Assembly: GCF_006345805.1 (NCBI RefSeq)
Contig: NC_043023.1
Location: forward strand, 21,018,001 to 21,082,000
DNA: 64,000 bases
Origin: Octopus sinensis
Taxonomy: Eukaryota
Direction: 5' to 3'
Shown: positions 6,160 to 63,123 of the stretch, piece after piece
How the letters are laid out: the number at the start of each line of letters is the position of its first letter
Position numbering within the stretch: position 1 is the first letter of the stretch
Notes under the pieces: generated by a model
Seen by the model: only the letters and a program-made list of their open reading frames with translations
Told to the model about the DNA's origin: nothing
Database searches by the model: none
Made by a program: the position numbers and the translations under genes

Positions 6160-9100
6160 TTTCTTTACTACCCACAAGGGGACAAACAAGGACAGACAAA
6201 CGGATTAAGTCGATTACATCAACCCACGTGCGTAACTGGTACTTAATTTATCGACCCCGAAAAGATGAAAGTCAAAGTCGACCTCGGCGGAATTTGAACT
6301 CAGAAGGAAAAGACAGATGAAATACCTATTTCTTTACTACCCACAAGGGTCTAAACACAGAGGGGACAAACAAGGACAAACAGATTCAGTCGATTACATT
6401 GACTCCAGTGCGTAACTGGTACTTAATTTATCGACTCCGAAAAAATGAAAGGCAAAGTCGACCTCGAAGTAATTTGAACTCAGAACGTAAAGACATACGA
6501 AAAACCTGTTTCTTTACTACCCACAACGGGCTAAACACAGAGGGGACAAACAAGAACAGACAAATAGATTAAGTCGATTACATTGACCCCAGTGTGTAAC
6601 TGGTACTTAATTTATCGACCCCGAAAGAATGAATGGCAAAGTCTACATCGGAGGAATTTGAACTCAGAACAAAAAGACAGACGAAATAACTGTTTATTTA
6701 CTACCCACAAGGGGCTAAACACAGAGGGAACAAACTTGACCTTGTGGCGAGCTGGCATAACCGTTAGCACGCCGAGCAAAATGCGTAGCCGTATTTCGTC
6801 TGCTGCTACGTTCTGAGTTCAAATTCAACCGCGGTCTACTTTGCCTTTCATCATTTCTGGATCGATACATAATGTACCAGTTATGCACTGGGGTCGATTT
6901 AATCGACTTAATCCGTTTGTCTGTCCTTGATTGTCTTCTCTGTGTTTAGCCCTTCGTGGGTAGTAAAGAAATATGTACTTAATTTATCGACCCCGTAAGG
7001 ATGAAAGGCAAAGTCGACCTCAAAGTAGTTTGAACTCTGAACGTAAAGACAGACGAAATGCCTGTTCCTTTACAACCCACAAGGGGCTAAACACAGAGGG
7101 GAAAAACAACAACAGACAAATAGATTAAGCCGATAACATCGACCCCAGTGCGTAACTGGTACTTGATTCATCGGCCCCGAAAGGATGAATGGCAAAGTCG
7201 ACCTCGGCGGAATTTGAACTCAGAAAGTAAAGACAAACGAAATACCTATTTCTTTACTACCCACAAGGGGATAAACAAGGACAGACAAACAGATTAAGCC
7301 GATTACATCGACCCCAGTGCGTAACTGGTACTTGATTTATCGGCCCCGAAAAGATGAAAGGAAAAGTCGACCTCGGAGGAATTTGAACTCAGAACGTAAA
7401 GACAGACGAAAAACCTGTTTCTTTACTACCCACAAGGGGCTAAATACAGAGGGGACAAACAAGGACAGACAAACAGATTATGCCGATTACATCGACCCCA
7501 GTGCGTAACTGGTACTTAATTTATCGGCCCCGAAAAGATGAAAGGAAAAGTCGACCTCGAAGTAATTTGAACTCAGAACGTACAGACAGATGAAATACGC
7601 ATTTCTTTACTATCCACAAGGGGCTAAACACAGAGGGGACAAATAACGACAGTCAAACGGATTAAGTCGATTACATGGACTCCAGTGCGCAACTGGTACT
7701 AAAGTTATCGGCCCCGAAAGGATGAAAGTCAAATCAACCTCGGAGGAATTTGAACTTAGAACGTAAAGGCAGACGAAATACCTGTTTCTTTACTACCCAC
7801 AAGGGGCTAAACACAGAGGGAATAATCTTGAACTGGCGGTGAGCTGGCAGAACCGTTAGCACGCCGGGCGAAATGCGTTGCCGTATTTCGTCTGCCTTTA
7901 CGTTCTGAGTTCAAATTCCGCCGAGGTCGACTTTGCCTTTCATCCTTTCGGGGTCGATAAATTAAGTACCATTTACGCACTGGGGTCGATTTAATCGGCT
8001 TAATCTGTTTGTCTGTCCTTGTTTGTCTTCTCTGTGTTTAGCCGCTCCTGGGTAGTAAAGAAATAGGTACTTAATTTATCGGCCCCTAAAGGATGAAAGG
8101 CAAAGTCGACCTCGGAGGAATCTGAACTCAGAACGTAAAGACAGACGAAATACCTTTCTTTACTACCCACAAGGGGCTAAACACTGAGGGGACAAATAAG
8201 GACAGACAAACGGATTATGTCGATTACATCGACTCCAGTGCGTGACTGTTACTTAATTTGTCGACTCCGAAAAGATGAAAGGAAAAGTCGATTTCAACGG
8301 AATTTTAACTCAGAACATAAAGACAGACGAAATACCTTTCTTTACTACCCACGAGGGGCTAAACATAGAGGGGACAAACAAGGACAGACAAACAGATCAA
8401 GTTGATTACCTCGACCCCAGTGCGTAACTGGTACTTAATTTATCGGCCCCGAAAAGATGAAAGTCAAAGTCGACCTCGGCAGAATTTGAACTCAGAACGT
8501 AAAGACAGATGAAATACGTATTTCTTTACTATCCACAAGGGACTAAACATAGAGGGGACAAACAAGGACAGACAAACAGATTAAGTCGATTATATCGACC
8601 CCAGTGCGTAACTGCTACTTAATTTATCGTCCCCGAAAAGATGAACGGAAAGTAAACCTCGGCGGAATTTTAACTCAGAACATAAAGACAGACGAAATAC
8701 CTATTTCTTTACTACCCACAAAGGGCTAAACACATAGGGGACTAACAAGAACAGACAAACGGATTAAGTCGATTACATCGACACCAGTGCGTAACTGGTA
8801 CTTAATTTATAGACCCCGAAAGCATGAAAGGCAAAGTCGACCTCGGAGGAATTTGAACTCAGAACGTAAAGACAGATGAAATACCTATTTCTTCACTACC
8901 CACAAGGGGCTAAACACAGAGGGGACAAACAAGGACAGACAAACAGATTAAGTTGATTACATCGACTCCAGTGCGTAACTGGTACTTAATTTATGGGCCC
9001 CGAAAAGATGAAAGGCAAAGTCGACCTCGGCGGTATTTGAACTCAGAACTTAAAGACAGACGGAATACCTATTTCCTAACTACCCACAAGGGGCTAAACA

Positions 9101-9165
9101 CAGAGGGGACAAACAAGGACAGACAAACGGATTATGTCGATTATATCGACCCCAGTGCATAACTG
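6160..9165 (-). mobile_element. Tandem array of about 180-bp headless SINE-B bodies with two inverted full copies (6743-6972, 7833-8067)
   Basis: Unit TTTCTTTACTACCCACAAGGGG...GAACTCAGAACGTAAAGACAGACGAAATACC repeated. Confidence 0.9.
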
Positions 9166-9701
9166 AGAGCAGTTCATGCCAACAAAGTGACACTGGGGTA
9201 AAACATACGAAGCCCAGTATACCCATCATGACTACCCGTCTGATAAGGGTACACCACGCATATGCATCACAACCATATGTGCTCGACATGGTGATCTCAT
9301 ATCAAAATAAACAGCACATGACCTTGCTGGTTGGGCCCAGTTAGAAATTTCTTCAGGTTGAGTAGCCCATCCCGTTCAAAAGGTCCCTGAATAAGGCTTG
9401 TTTAAGGATGTTGAAAGAACCACCCATGTTTCCAGAGGTGAATTATTCAAACCCCAAAGAATCCCTCTCAACACGTGGTTATGATGCTCACCCACTACTT
9501 TTGCTCGTGGAGATGCACATATCGTCAGCCACTGAGGGACATGCTCAACTGGTTAAGATCTAGCAACTGACAAGCAAATCTGTGGTATTGAGCAGAATAT
9601 TTGCTGTAGACCATCTTTTATACCAAGACAAAACAATGTACATGATGACACTTCCAATCAGTTAAGATCAGAAGCCATGAGAGCCACTGCCTGGTACTGC
9701 T
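9165..9701. mobile_element. About 540-bp non-coding interspersed repeat next to (ATT)n, copy 1
   Basis: Co-linear with 14614-15172; followed by (ATT)n 9702-9771. Confidence 0.8.
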
Positions 9702-9784
9702 ATTATTATTATTATTATTATTATTATTATTATTATTATTATTATTATATTATTATTATTATTATTATTATTTAAAAAGTTTGA

Positions 9785-10310
9785 TTCGATCCCATAAAGT
9801 TTCGTAGCTTCGTAACAGGAATCTGGCTTGTTGAAGATTGGCGCACCAGAACCAGAATGTATCCAGAATGTTGGTGGAACACCCCAATAGAATCAGAAAG
9901 CCGGATTAAACACAACGGACCCGATATTGTTCTAAGGGACGGAAAATAAGTCAAGCACTTTTGAAGAGATCGTCTGCCCAGTCCTATGTCAATATCTCAT
10001 CGTATTAAAGCGGCGAGCTGGCAGAAACGTTAGCACGCCGGGCGAGATGCCTAGCGGTATTTCGTCTTTACGATCTGAGTTCAAATTCCGCCGAGGTCGA
10101 CTTTGCTTTTCATTCTTTCTCGGTCGATAAATTCAGTACGAGCTGCGTACTAGGGTCGATCTCAACGACTGGTCCCCTCCCCAAAAATTGTGCCTCGAGT
10201 AGAAAAGAATATCTCATCATATATTAAAGAAAAAGAGGGATCTATGGAGAACTGTTTGAAAAAATACAGTTCTGATATACAGGCCATAGATTTTCATTTC
10301 TACCTACTAA
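9785..10310 (+). pseudogene. Degenerate RLE-type LINE C-terminal fragment, split by SINE-B
   Basis: Translates to ECWWNTPIESESRIKHNGPDIVL, like EYWWNIPIKT...PDIVV at 41700-41760. Confidence 0.55.
10009..10207 (+). mobile_element. SINE-B monomer with alternative tail
   Basis: Head GGCGAGCTGGCAGAAACGTTAGCACGCC, B box GAGTTCAAATTCC; imperfect TSD AATATCTCATC..TATTAAAG at 9991 and 10208. Confidence 0.8.
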
Positions 10311-10513
10311 CAGAGATGCACTGGGCTAAGTAAAAACAGATCGACATAAAAACTACATATGCTGGGGTAGATCAGGTACCCTGAGTCCCTTCTGTAGCAA
10401 TCGTTCCAATTATTTAACACGGTTCAATTATTTAATAAAAGAGTAAAAAACACAAGAAGTACCGAAGAGGAAAGTGACGATGAGAAGTCGGGTGGAATGA
10501 AAGAGTAACTTAC

Positions 10514-61876: not shown

Positions 61877-62214
61877 ATACGTCTAATTCCATCAGAACCC
61901 ATAATCTTCCAAGAAAGAACCAATGCCGTTTCTCTTCACAGAACATTTGAAACTGAAAAACATCGGAATTAAAAATGTCCCTGTATTTTGGAGCCTGCTA
62001 GATACTTCATGCTGTCCAGCGGTTTGGAAAAGAAGGACGTCCATTATGACTATTTTAGGAAATTAACTTCCTCTCCCAGACCTAACCACGGTCTTTGAGT
62101 AGAAAGAATGGCATTATTATTATACTTTGCAAAAGGAATAAAATATCTGTGTATCATAGCAGCGATCCGTTTCCCAGTTTCTCGGTGGATGTAAATGTCT
62201 CTATAAATTAAGGA

Positions 62215-62370
62215 AAATGAGAACATCTATGGAGAGCTGACAAGGAACTTACAGCTCTTGTATCCATGCCATACATGTCCATTTGTTTCCATTATCATAG
62301 GTGCCCTGAGCAACGTCACAACAGATTTGCCTAGAAAATTTGAGATGTCTAGGCTCTCAAAAACAGAAGA
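62215..62370 (+). pseudogene. Second RLE family fragment
   Basis: YGELTRNLQLLYP...IIIGAL. Confidence 0.6.
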
Positions 62371-62423
62371 AAGAATGGATTTTATTTTACTATTGAGGTT
62401 CTTGGAATGACTATACAAATACG

Positions 62424-62840
62424 TATTTCTTTACTACCCACAAGGGACTAAACACAGAGGGGACAAACAAGGACAGACAAACGGATTAATTCGATTATAT
62501 CGACCCCGGTGCGTAACTGGTACTTATTTAATCGACCCCGAAAGGATGAAAGGCAAAGTCGACCTCAGCGGAATTTCAACTCAGAACGTAACGGCAGACG
62601 AAATACCTATTTCTTTACTACCCACAAGGGGCTAAACACAGAGAGGACAAACAAGGACAGACAAACGGATTAAGTCGATTACATCAACCCCAGTGCGTAA
62701 CTGGTACTTATTTAATCGACCCCGAAAGGATGAAAGGCAAAGTCGACCTCGGCGGAATTTGAACTCAGAACGTAGCGGCAAACGAAATACCGCTAAGCAT
62801 TTCGTCCAGCGCGCTAATAATTCTGCCAGCTCGCCGCCTT
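62424..62840 (-). mobile_element. SINE-B dimer
   Basis: TSD AATGACTATACAAATAC at 62406-62422 and 62841-62857. Confidence 0.92.
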
Positions 62841-63123
62841 AATGACTATACAAATACAGCCTCATAAATGACTGTCAGTTTCAGATGTTCTATAAAGAGA
62901 CACGGCGTTGACTCTTTCGTGAAAGACTACGTGTGTTGATATAATCTGCTTTTAAATATGTGCTATGTGAGTCCAGTATAGTTTCTCTGGATATCAGTGT
63001 CAGACGTTTATAGAAGCTCTGTATATCGCCGCTTTATAAACATCTAAGCCGTTTAGTGGAAATTCCTGGGCAAGGTTTCGATTACAATCTGGGTGTTGAG
63101 AGGTGAGTCGAAAAAGTGGGAAA

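Follow-up and report, generated by a model that had tools for sequence, protein, structure and literature searches.

Tandem arrays of headless SINE-B units in octopus DNA, stacked at a target-like internal site, and their possible origin by re-priming during retrotransposition

How interspersed repeats give rise to tandem and satellite DNA is a long-standing question, and the two cases closest to the one described here have been attributed to a mechanism without junction evidence. In the blood clam Scapharca (Anadara) broughtonii, HCD-tRNA SINEs (short interspersed elements) form arrays of the structure TSD1-(SINE)n-TSD1, in which TSD stands for target-site duplication, and unequal homologous recombination was proposed by the authors (PMC11481361). 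In squamates, SINE-derived satellites (sSats) of the families Squam1-3 are seen as a first step of satellite birth (PMC10702118). Multimers of full-length SINEs are also on record, namely Dip/B1 in the jerboa and SINE tandems in plants (cited in PMC10702118, PMC11481361). Regarding the enzymes, the R2 protein makes longer products of target-primed reverse transcription (TPRT) by jumping from finished or truncated cDNA to the 3' ends of further RNAs; head-to-tail tandem insertions have been obtained in cells with the PRINT system, and jumping takes place in vitro as well (PMC11371274). Here we describe a stretch of 64 kb from Octopus sinensis (assembly GCF_006345805.1, contig NC_043023.1, positions 21,018,001 to 21,082,000), hereafter the window, in which an element called SINE-B forms tandem arrays of headless units. 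The units are stacked at an internal site whose sequence is also enriched at the insertion targets of the element, and the arrays may have arisen by re-priming of nascent cDNA within single retrotransposition events.

The window is very rich in microsatellites and retroposons. It was complemented with three loci of ~81 kb together, from O. sinensis (L001), O. vulgaris (L002) and O. bimaculoides (L003), which were reached through octopus proteins matched by SINE-derived peptides. In protein searches, peptides from SINE-B translations match only three octopus proteins (O. vulgaris, O. bimaculoides), and exact 23- and 25-mers of SINE-B gave 0 matches in metagenome collections and prokaryote genomes. 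SINE-B is present in all three additional loci, at a density of roughly one per 20-40 kb, compared with ~12 loci per 64 kb in the window; the whole evidence base is one 64-kb window unusually dense in SINE-B and three short loci. Arrays were detected by blastn with the full element, by Tandem Repeats Finder (TRF) and by direct reading of the letters, and the name SINE-B is that of an earlier note on this DNA.

The full SINE-B monomer is ~235 nt long and reads (TT)AAGGCGGCGAGCTGGCAGAAACGTTAGCACGCCGGGCGAAATGCTTAGC / GGTATTTCGTCTGCC...GAGTTCAAATTCC...GTGGGTAGTAAAGAAATA, where the slash, here and below, marks a junction position. It is short, non-coding (only short open reading frames are found), dispersed, and flanked by TSDs of 14-21 bp at 6-7 loci, as expected of a LINE-dependent SINE; most copies in the window are sense on the minus strand. 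The tail ends in ...GTGGGTAGTAAAGAAATA, and a 14-mer of it, found 31 times where 0.9 would be expected, is confined to SINE-B copies in the window. No partner LINE (long interspersed element) sharing this tail was found among the LINEs of the window or of L001-L003, those at 139-3605 and 20200-22149 of the window ending differently; the partner may simply lie outside the sequence at hand. Reading of the 5' part reveals GAGTTCAAATTCC, which is similar to a B box, and TGGCAGAAACG, with a weaker similarity to an A box. The head had been described as tRNA-like; neither ARAGORN (default and relaxed) nor Rfam (gathering threshold and E<=10) returned anything usable, tRNA ancestry of the head is not detectable, and the label reflects only the resemblance to A and B boxes.

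Six loci of the window contain tandem SINE-B bodies of 184 bp, all sense on the minus strand, and they make up half or more of the SINE-B loci there, compared with 0 of 3 elements in L001-L003. Five young arrays have exactly one head (~50 nt), located at the 5' end, and the old array at 6158-9165 has none, in agreement with the one-head/many-body architecture first noted at these six loci. The bodies correspond to consensus nt ~52-235; the head is indeed missing, as had been stated, yet the loss is limited to the first ~50 nt and the B box is retained. All internal junctions read AAAGAAATA/GGTATTTCG, save for point changes, one 6-nt re-copy and one 2-nt deletion, which confirms that the tail is joined uniformly to a site in the element's own head. 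The arrays are thus tandems of part of a SINE in which one terminal unit extends as far as the SINE end, the features by which SINE-derived satellites are recognized.

The youngest array (56636-57424, minus strand) is composed of a head (~57372-57424) and four bodies (57188-57371, 57004-57187, 56820-57003 and 56636-56819, minus strand). Its internal junctions are ATAGTTATTT, ATGGGTATTT and ATGGGTATTT, and its outer junction is ATAGG/TATTTT. It is bracketed by a perfect 14-bp TSD, TAGTAATTAAAATA, at 56620-56633 on the 3' side and 57425-57438 on the 5' side, which starts TATTTT. A GG at 56634-56635 precedes the 3'-side copy of the TSD only and is not found in the 5'-side copy, which hints at an RNA-templated GG, although a TSD mismatch explains it equally well; no other junction bears on pairing by the RNA 3' end. 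The flank, GGTATTTT, supplies the first T4 run and with it a putative Pol III stop. A head and two bodies form the array at 62424-62840 (minus strand; outer junction AAATAC/GTATTTG), with a perfect 17-bp TSD at 62406-62422 and 62841-62857 that starts GTATTTG. The array at 40592-41013 (minus strand) likewise consists of a head and two bodies; its internal junction includes the 6-nt re-copy AAATAGAAATAGGTATTT (at 40586), and its 18-bp TSD (40574-40591 and 41014-41031), with one mismatch, starts GGTATTA. Each of these three arrays sits in one insertion site, as a single TSD pair brackets the whole array. No clear TSD was detected in searches around the other three loci. These are the array at 50711-51316 (minus strand; head and three bodies), whose three units have the variants T160 and A167 in common, T160 occurring in no other aligned unit; the older array at 33484-33892 (minus strand), with a head 5'-truncated at ~nt 16, two bodies and the junction AAATACGTATTTCG; and the old headless array at 6158-9165 (minus strand; TRF, blastn), which comprises 15 units and a partial unit starting at consensus nt ~144.

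Two trivial sources of such structures were rejected. An assembly artefact is ruled out by differences of 3-12% between units and by intact TSDs, and independent adjacent insertions by units without heads and without internal TSDs. The window contains an assembly gap at 37688-37787 (no strand), inside a 379-bp tandem repeat adjoining an (AC)n tract; it lies more than 2.4 kb from any SINE-B copy (the nearest ones end at 35255 and begin at 40586), and no feature used in the analysis crosses it. The 379-bp repeat, present in 3.8 copies at 36220-37687, runs directly into the gap, which is probably a collapsed or unresolved stretch of that repeat.

For 14 independent outer junctions, of which 11 lie in the window and 3 in L001-L003, the seven bases following the tail were compared with GGTAYTT, a motif fixed beforehand from the internal site, and the SINE-masked window served as background. 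A match of at least 6/7 was found at 6 of the 14 (GGTATTA, GGTATTT, CGTATTT, GGTATGT and twice GGTACTT), with two further junctions matching at 5; the background is 0.29% (0.0029) per site, giving p=1.6e-12, and the proposed preference for this motif at outer junctions is borne out. When the two antisense events within SINE copies are left out, 4 of 12 junctions match (p=3e-8). Among the newly fetched junctions, that of L001 reads GGTATGT and that of L002 AGTATAT, and L003 gives no match. In each of the 7 TSD-defined sites, GGTAT, GTAT or TAT is found among the first 5 nt; the motif or its TAT core is thus part of the TSD and was present in the target before insertion. The base preceding the nick is often C. 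Target choice is therefore sequence-specific, with a loose specificity of ~4-6 nt, and a real preference for (C)/GGTAT, GTAT or TAT at the SINE-B 3' junction is supported. Put differently, reverse transcription of SINE-B starts preferentially from DNA 3' ends of the form ...(A)ATACC, for which either endonuclease specificity or pairing by the RNA 3' end may account.

Among the sites named in the earlier note, the TSD at 40591 starts GGTATTA, that of the array at 62424 GTATTTG and that of the array at 56636 TATTTT, with GG on the element side only. The site at 20091, where the plus-strand monomer at 19856-20091 ends, had been listed as a further example; its 3' flank, AGGAATT, matches GGTAYTT at 4/7 positions and there is no TSD. 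Conversely, the minus-strand monomer at 33926-34154, which was thought to lack the motif, has a perfect 18-bp TSD, TATTGTTTCTACACCTGG, that starts TATTG and carries the TAT core. A third monomer (35019-35255, plus strand) lies within (TA)n/(CA)n sequence, with TATATAT as its flank.

The enriched target heptamer is the very site at which the bodies are stacked, GGTATTT occurring once inside SINE-B, ~50 nt from its 5' end. Common to the two best models of array formation is efficient priming on SINE-B RNA by DNA 3' ends of the form ...AAATACC. In the one that we tentatively prefer, with a probability somewhat short of even, arrays would originate in one event by template jumping, the nascent cDNA end ...AAATACC restarting on another SINE-B RNA. 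During TPRT the cDNA would leave its template just after the heptamer, when the body has been copied. Its 3' end (...CGAAATACC) would then resemble the nicked target and could prime anew on the 3' end of another SINE-B RNA. Each restart would add one headless body of 184 nt, and the last template would be copied to its 5' end, which gives the single head. The product would be head-(body)n, made in one insertion event and flanked by one TSD pair, and headless arrays would later grow by unequal exchange at the DNA level, as seen for 6158-9165. The steps that we infer are run-off, template jump and origin in a single event, as well as whatever part pairing by the RNA 3' end may play. Re-priming is supported by the uniform junctions at six loci, the TSDs around three whole arrays and the identity of the internal site with the target motif, and also by the star-like distances among units, the apparent mixing of lineages, the grouping of the head with its adjacent unit, the breakpoint in the L001 copy, the hairpin and the control family B', all of which are described below.

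The same junctions could be propagated if head-(body)n elements acted as masters that are transcribed and retrotransposed as a unit, the number of units shifting by slippage of the reverse transcriptase or by initiation at an internal tail. Pol III is assumed here to stop only at T4 runs, as it does in most animals. Young SINE-B elements have no internal T4, the first one being in the flank, so that a transcript would continue into the flank and arrays could be transcribed whole if that condition holds. The identity of the junction across loci and the subfamily markers common to the units of an array are expected of such masters, and a start at an internal tail, which would place GGUAUUU just 3', could explain both GGTAT-like targets and the extra GG at 56634-56635. 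However, monomers also show the TAT/GTAT target. Nor do unit numbers, which are 2, 2, 2, 3 and 4 in young arrays and 15 in the old one, correspond to a fixed multimer of the Alu type, and the comparison of arrays 56636 and 62424 revealed no position-specific variants common to both, their closest pair of units being the terminal unit of one with the head-proximal unit of the other. Moreover, monomers as well as arrays are found in each of the two major subfamilies, so that the transition from monomer to array is recurrent. The varying unit numbers, the lack of position-specific shared variants between these arrays, and apparent lineage mosaics that run in different, indeed opposite, orders argue against descent of the arrays from one multimeric master; propagation of multi-body masters is accordingly judged unlikely.

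These mosaics emerge from the variants of individual units, and marker-based arguments rest on few sites. The non-CpG markers C71 and T206 (with T38 in the head) link unit 4 of array 56636, unit 1 of array 62424 and the L002 monomer, other units carrying the alternative states; for the linkage of C71 with T206, Fisher's test gives p=0.012 within the subfamily and 0.064 over all units. Single arrays therefore appear to mix source lineages, in different orders. Such mixing, if real, leaves no room for one multimeric master, for rolling-circle copying or for simple duplication. In the two arrays for which it is informative, the single lineage marker of the head places the head with the unit next to it. 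In the four-unit array 56636, private variants follow the order a-b-b-a, which neither simple tandem duplication nor rolling-circle copying yields. Overall, two units of one array resemble each other more than units paired at random do (p=0.0008), mostly through age and subfamily. For arrays 56636 and 62424, which belong to the same subfamily, the mean distance between units is 4.9% within and 5.0% between arrays, indicating that the arrays are as old as their units and arguing against late duplication in situ. The young arrays look like composites of several RNA templates, put together during insertion or close to it in time. As to the head of array 62424 (62788-62840), it has 5 changes in ~50 nt, four of which are CpG transitions, and the adjoining body has ~6 changes in 184 nt, a per-site rate of about one third of that of the head; this suggests that the CpG-rich head decays through methylation.

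In a rolling-circle scheme, body RNA would be circularized by loop cleavage and ligation to the RNA 3' end and reverse transcribed repeatedly, until the enzyme moves to a linear RNA of full length. The constant junction could then be the RNA 3' end joined to nt ~52, and the junction variant AAATG, private to units 2 and 3 of array 56636, is readily accommodated. Differences in lineage markers and private variants between the headless units of one array are not, and the motif common to the outer targets finds no explanation, which makes this scheme the least probable of all those considered, by our estimate a very slight chance.

An origin at the level of DNA has to be considered because one array clearly grew in that way. 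In the old array at 6158-9165, the array-specific variants TGTCTTTACG and CATCTTTTCGGGGCC are found in nearly all units and T4 runs occur inside units; a 1,091-bp higher-order duplication (1,694-bp self-alignment, 86.9% identity) is present, and a 2-nt junction deletion is common to two neighbouring units. The private variants, the higher-order duplication and the shared deletion show growth at the DNA level by ordinary unequal exchange, and this locus shows that arrays of this kind may later behave as satellite DNA. All arrays might then have started from the 7-bp repeats 184 bp apart formed by the internal site and the flank of a monomer inserted next to GGTAT, through slippage or microhomology-mediated duplication followed by unequal crossing-over. 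GGTAT is more frequent in the outer flanks of arrays than in those of monomers, the window is rich in other tandem duplications, and unequal recombination is how the squamate and bivalve arrays have been explained (PMC10702118, PMC11481361). The units of young arrays, however, are as diverged within as between arrays, and the a-b-b-a pattern and the apparent lineage mosaics do not fit. Arrays with the same junction at half or more of the loci are also a high yield for a 7-bp microhomology, and neither the target preference of monomers nor the breakpoint in the L001 copy is explained. We therefore consider a DNA-level origin improbable for the young arrays.

A more serious competitor of re-priming is stepwise self-nesting, in which the partner endonuclease would nick the GGTATTT of a copy already in the genome; cDNA made there from a new SINE-B RNA would anneal upstream to the homologous resident sequence, so that each event adds exactly one body and leaves neither a second head nor an internal TSD. 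It takes the identity of target motif and internal site at face value, and mixed source lineages within an array are what it predicts. For L1, cell-culture assays have documented that the 5' junction of a new cDNA with a resident L1 can form with the aid of homology or microhomology. Joins within SINE-B copies do occur. A full plus-strand monomer (6744-6973) embedded in the old array is joined to an antisense body as AAATA/TGTACTT, and its second copy (7835-8065, plus strand) as AAATA/GGTACTT; ~50 bp of the target unit are gone and there is no TSD. Near 50561, a 5'-truncated plus-strand tail fragment (50544-50561) is joined as AAATA/GGTACTT to a minus-strand partial copy (50562-50690, nt 1-143), so that 50544-50690 represents a second independent antisense junction. 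The opposite-strand joins at GGTACTT reported earlier are thus real but amount to two independent events within SINE-B copies rather than three, those at 6970 and 8067 being one event copied by the 1,091-bp duplication. Elsewhere, partial SINE-B/B' sequences form an inverted pair at 16804-17058 (plus-strand nt 2-162 followed by minus-strand nt 113-3), a long palindrome beside (TTA)n.

If bodies were added one at a time, divergence should rise from the head-proximal to the distal unit. A weak trend of this kind exists, with 54 substitutions in terminal and 42 in head-proximal units and terminal units more diverged in 3 of 5 arrays, but it is not significant (p=0.13). Several observations speak against successive insertion. 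Where the head marker is informative, in two arrays, it joins the head to its neighbouring unit and not to the terminal one, as simple nesting would require. None of the 8 added units departs from the major subfamily of its terminal unit, although both subfamilies are found at about equal numbers of loci. The older monomers at 19856, 33926 and 35019 remained monomers through the later burst. With a specificity of ~6 nt, resident copies should make up few of the available sites, yet internal junctions account for ~40% of all junctions in young elements.

The L001 copy provides a further argument. This single SINE-B insertion (L001:10443-10650, O. sinensis), flanked by the perfect 18-bp TSD GGTATGTTGAGCATACAA, has a head deletion of consensus nt ~20-52 whose 3' edge, CTGGCAG/TATTTCG, lies within 2 nt of the array junction. 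Self-nesting leaves a deletion at the same breakpoint unexplained. The edge suggests a break of reverse transcription at the array-junction position, which would explain both outcomes, namely a skip within one RNA or a restart on another. The SINE-B monomer of L002 (O. vulgaris) has a 21-bp TSD starting AGTATAT. All in all, a sequence preference stands, and an origin in one event fits at least as well as growth by successive insertion into resident copies, the self-nesting put forward in the earlier note, which is mechanistically credible but in our view less likely.

A structural feature of the SINE-B head coincides with the breakpoint. The predicted RNA fold contains a 13-bp hairpin with GGUAUUUCGUCUG as 3' arm, CGGGCGAAAUGCU as 5' arm and a UAGC loop, exemplified by CGrGCGAAATGCT-TAGC-rGTATTTCGTCTG at approximately 57355-57389 (minus strand; fold and covariation). 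Among 17 heads, taken from SINE-B and the sister family B', 94% of cells are paired, and compensatory changes are found at 3 pairs, including the loop-closing pair (U.G to G-C, four copies). The covariation score exceeds that of all 500 shuffles, a control that overstates significance owing to the kinship of the copies, and controls with slid partners are also clearly lower than the true pairing. The whole SINE-B RNA fold is not unusually stable (z = -1.1), and it is the head hairpin alone that is supported. The first base of the 184-bp body is the 3' member of the loop-closing pair, and the array junction GAAATA-GG-TATTTC is an inverted repeat by itself.

The fixed donor point could also reflect an event on the SINE RNA, with an m1G-type stop or a tRNA-type cleavage in the loop UUAGCGG. 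This loop resembles an anticodon loop, in which the initial G of GGUAUUU would be equivalent to position 37; methylation of that G by host tRNA enzymes, or a cut in the loop as in tRNA halves, would end the cDNA at this point and lead to a jump to the next RNA. We take the SINE-B loop TGCTTAGC to resemble the anticodon loop of tRNA-Ala(AGC). The head variant GCGTAGCCGTATTT has C in place of the first G of GGTATTT, together with the compensatory loop-closing change from U.G to G-C. It is found at 19876-19930, 35041-35095, 7851-7905 and 6759-6813, i.e., in the monomers at 19856-20091 and 35019-35255 and in the embedded pair, which makes three independent loci, and only in monomers: none of these 3 loci is an array, compared with 5 of the 8 others (p=0.12), consistent with tRNA-type processing. 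If true, the arrays would be a genomic fossil of such processing of the SINE transcript, though on balance we find an event of this kind on the RNA rather improbable.

The sister family B' serves as a control. It has the head, the body to ~nt 170 and the internal GGTATTTCG site as in SINE-B, and differs in its 3' part, which ends in GAGTAGAAAAGAAT; the monomer at 10003-10210 (plus strand, tail ...GAGTAGAAAAGAAT) has the TSD AATATCTCATC. B' TSDs start AATA, not GGTAT, and no headless arrays were found among ~6 or more B' copies. As B' lacks headless bodies, stacking seems to need an internal site that matches the priming preference of the family itself. B' copies are much commoner than SINE-B in L003 (11490-11705, 20704-20889, 30859-31078 and 32488-32694). 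The last 13 nt of the B' tail resemble the SINE-B tail, a likeness that suggests the use of related partner LINEs by the two families.

A number of points weigh against re-priming in a single event. Its basis is indirect, namely the star-like distances and a non-significant age gradient. The lineage-mosaic signal comes from 2-3 sites, which are variable in other family members too (over all units, p=0.064), and gene conversion is possible, since arrays 56636 and 62424 are only 5 kb apart. The hairpin should stall reverse transcriptase at its base rather than its top, leaving run-off at nt ~51 unexplained. A solitary headless body flanked by a TSD would sometimes be expected from run-off, and none was seen in the sequences analysed. 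The tendency of terminal units to be more diverged (54 vs 42, p=0.13) is what stepwise nesting predicts, and the two antisense junctions imply that resident copies, or their DNA intermediates, were used as primers. Lastly, the sample comprises one 64-kb window and three short loci.

Other repeats of the window show different arrangements. At 28480-28827 and again at 35810-36138, two SINE-A elements (GGAGTGGCTGTGTGGTAAGTAGC...) stand in tandem; the units of these dimers are complete, heads included, and joined via the (TA)n tail, so that headless stacking is specific to SINE-B. A nearly intact LINE at 139-3605 (open reading frames 891-3113 and 3150-3605, with an upstream one at 139-906) encodes endonuclease and reverse-transcriptase domains and has 86% identity to a public read-assembly protein and 57% to O. 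sinensis LOC118768055 (open reading frame 891-3113). TA-rich simple repeats occur at 4230-4610, ~0.6-1 kb downstream, and this LINE may be a candidate partner of SINE-A rather than of SINE-B. A 144-bp satellite at 24181-28184 (~28 units, 91% identity, with a three-unit higher-order period of 431 bp) is unrelated to SINE-B. In a C-terminal fragment of a reverse transcriptase (28961-30058), a 198-bp coding segment is repeated four times in tandem with 98% identity and the frame remains open; similarly, an open reading frame runs through an 87-bp tandem repeat at 12755-13479 (8.3 copies, 95% identity).

Such arrays are not mentioned in the repeat annotation of O. vulgaris (PMC13282606) or in the octopus SINE and repeat literature that was searched. 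SINEs account for ~11-12% of the O. vulgaris genome (PMC13282606), at which level an array-forming process could matter for octopus genome structure. The architecture itself is already known from squamates and the clam. The clam arrays, also from a mollusc, have one complete 5' head followed by head-truncated units, a single outer TSD pair, and palindromic SINE pairs. Their internal units are, however, truncated at the tail as well and no link between junction and motif has been reported, whereas octopus units keep the full tail and the junction equals the target motif. The squamate sSats, with units of 150-180 bp, are likewise tandems of part of a SINE, and their terminal unit is longer, extending to the end of the SINE. 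In contrast to the octopus arrays, they extend to ~1,000 units and are subtelomeric, and no TSD analysis, target motif or junction logic has been given for them. In full-length multimers, and similarly in the SINE-A dimers, insertion takes place in the 3' tail region of a copy already present, and every unit keeps its head, unlike in SINE-B.

Among site-specific or self-targeting non-LTR (long terminal repeat) elements, such as the Zepp clusters of Chlorella, Tx1, and Dong/R4, sequence-preferring insertion that includes members of the same family also builds clusters. These are autonomous LINEs, though, and their nested copies keep recognizable ends; to our knowledge, no product with precise addition of units has been described for them. 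The closest mechanistic parallel to the process proposed here is R2 jumping, in which the cDNA end moves to the next RNA 3' end within one TPRT event, and chimeric L1 retrocopies are a further case of template jumping. Jumps on record start mostly from the RNA 5' end or from random truncations, while the donor point in the octopus element is one fixed internal site that mimics the target, and TSDs of 14-21 bp suggest an APE-type enzyme and not R2. What is new with respect to all these systems is the identity of junction and target motif, the location of the site in a conserved hairpin, and the apparent assembly from several templates. If they hold genome-wide, these features would provide a concrete route, coupled to retrotransposition, from a SINE to a proto-satellite: by carrying a copy of its own preferred landing motif, a mobile element may have one way to seed satellite-like tandem DNA.

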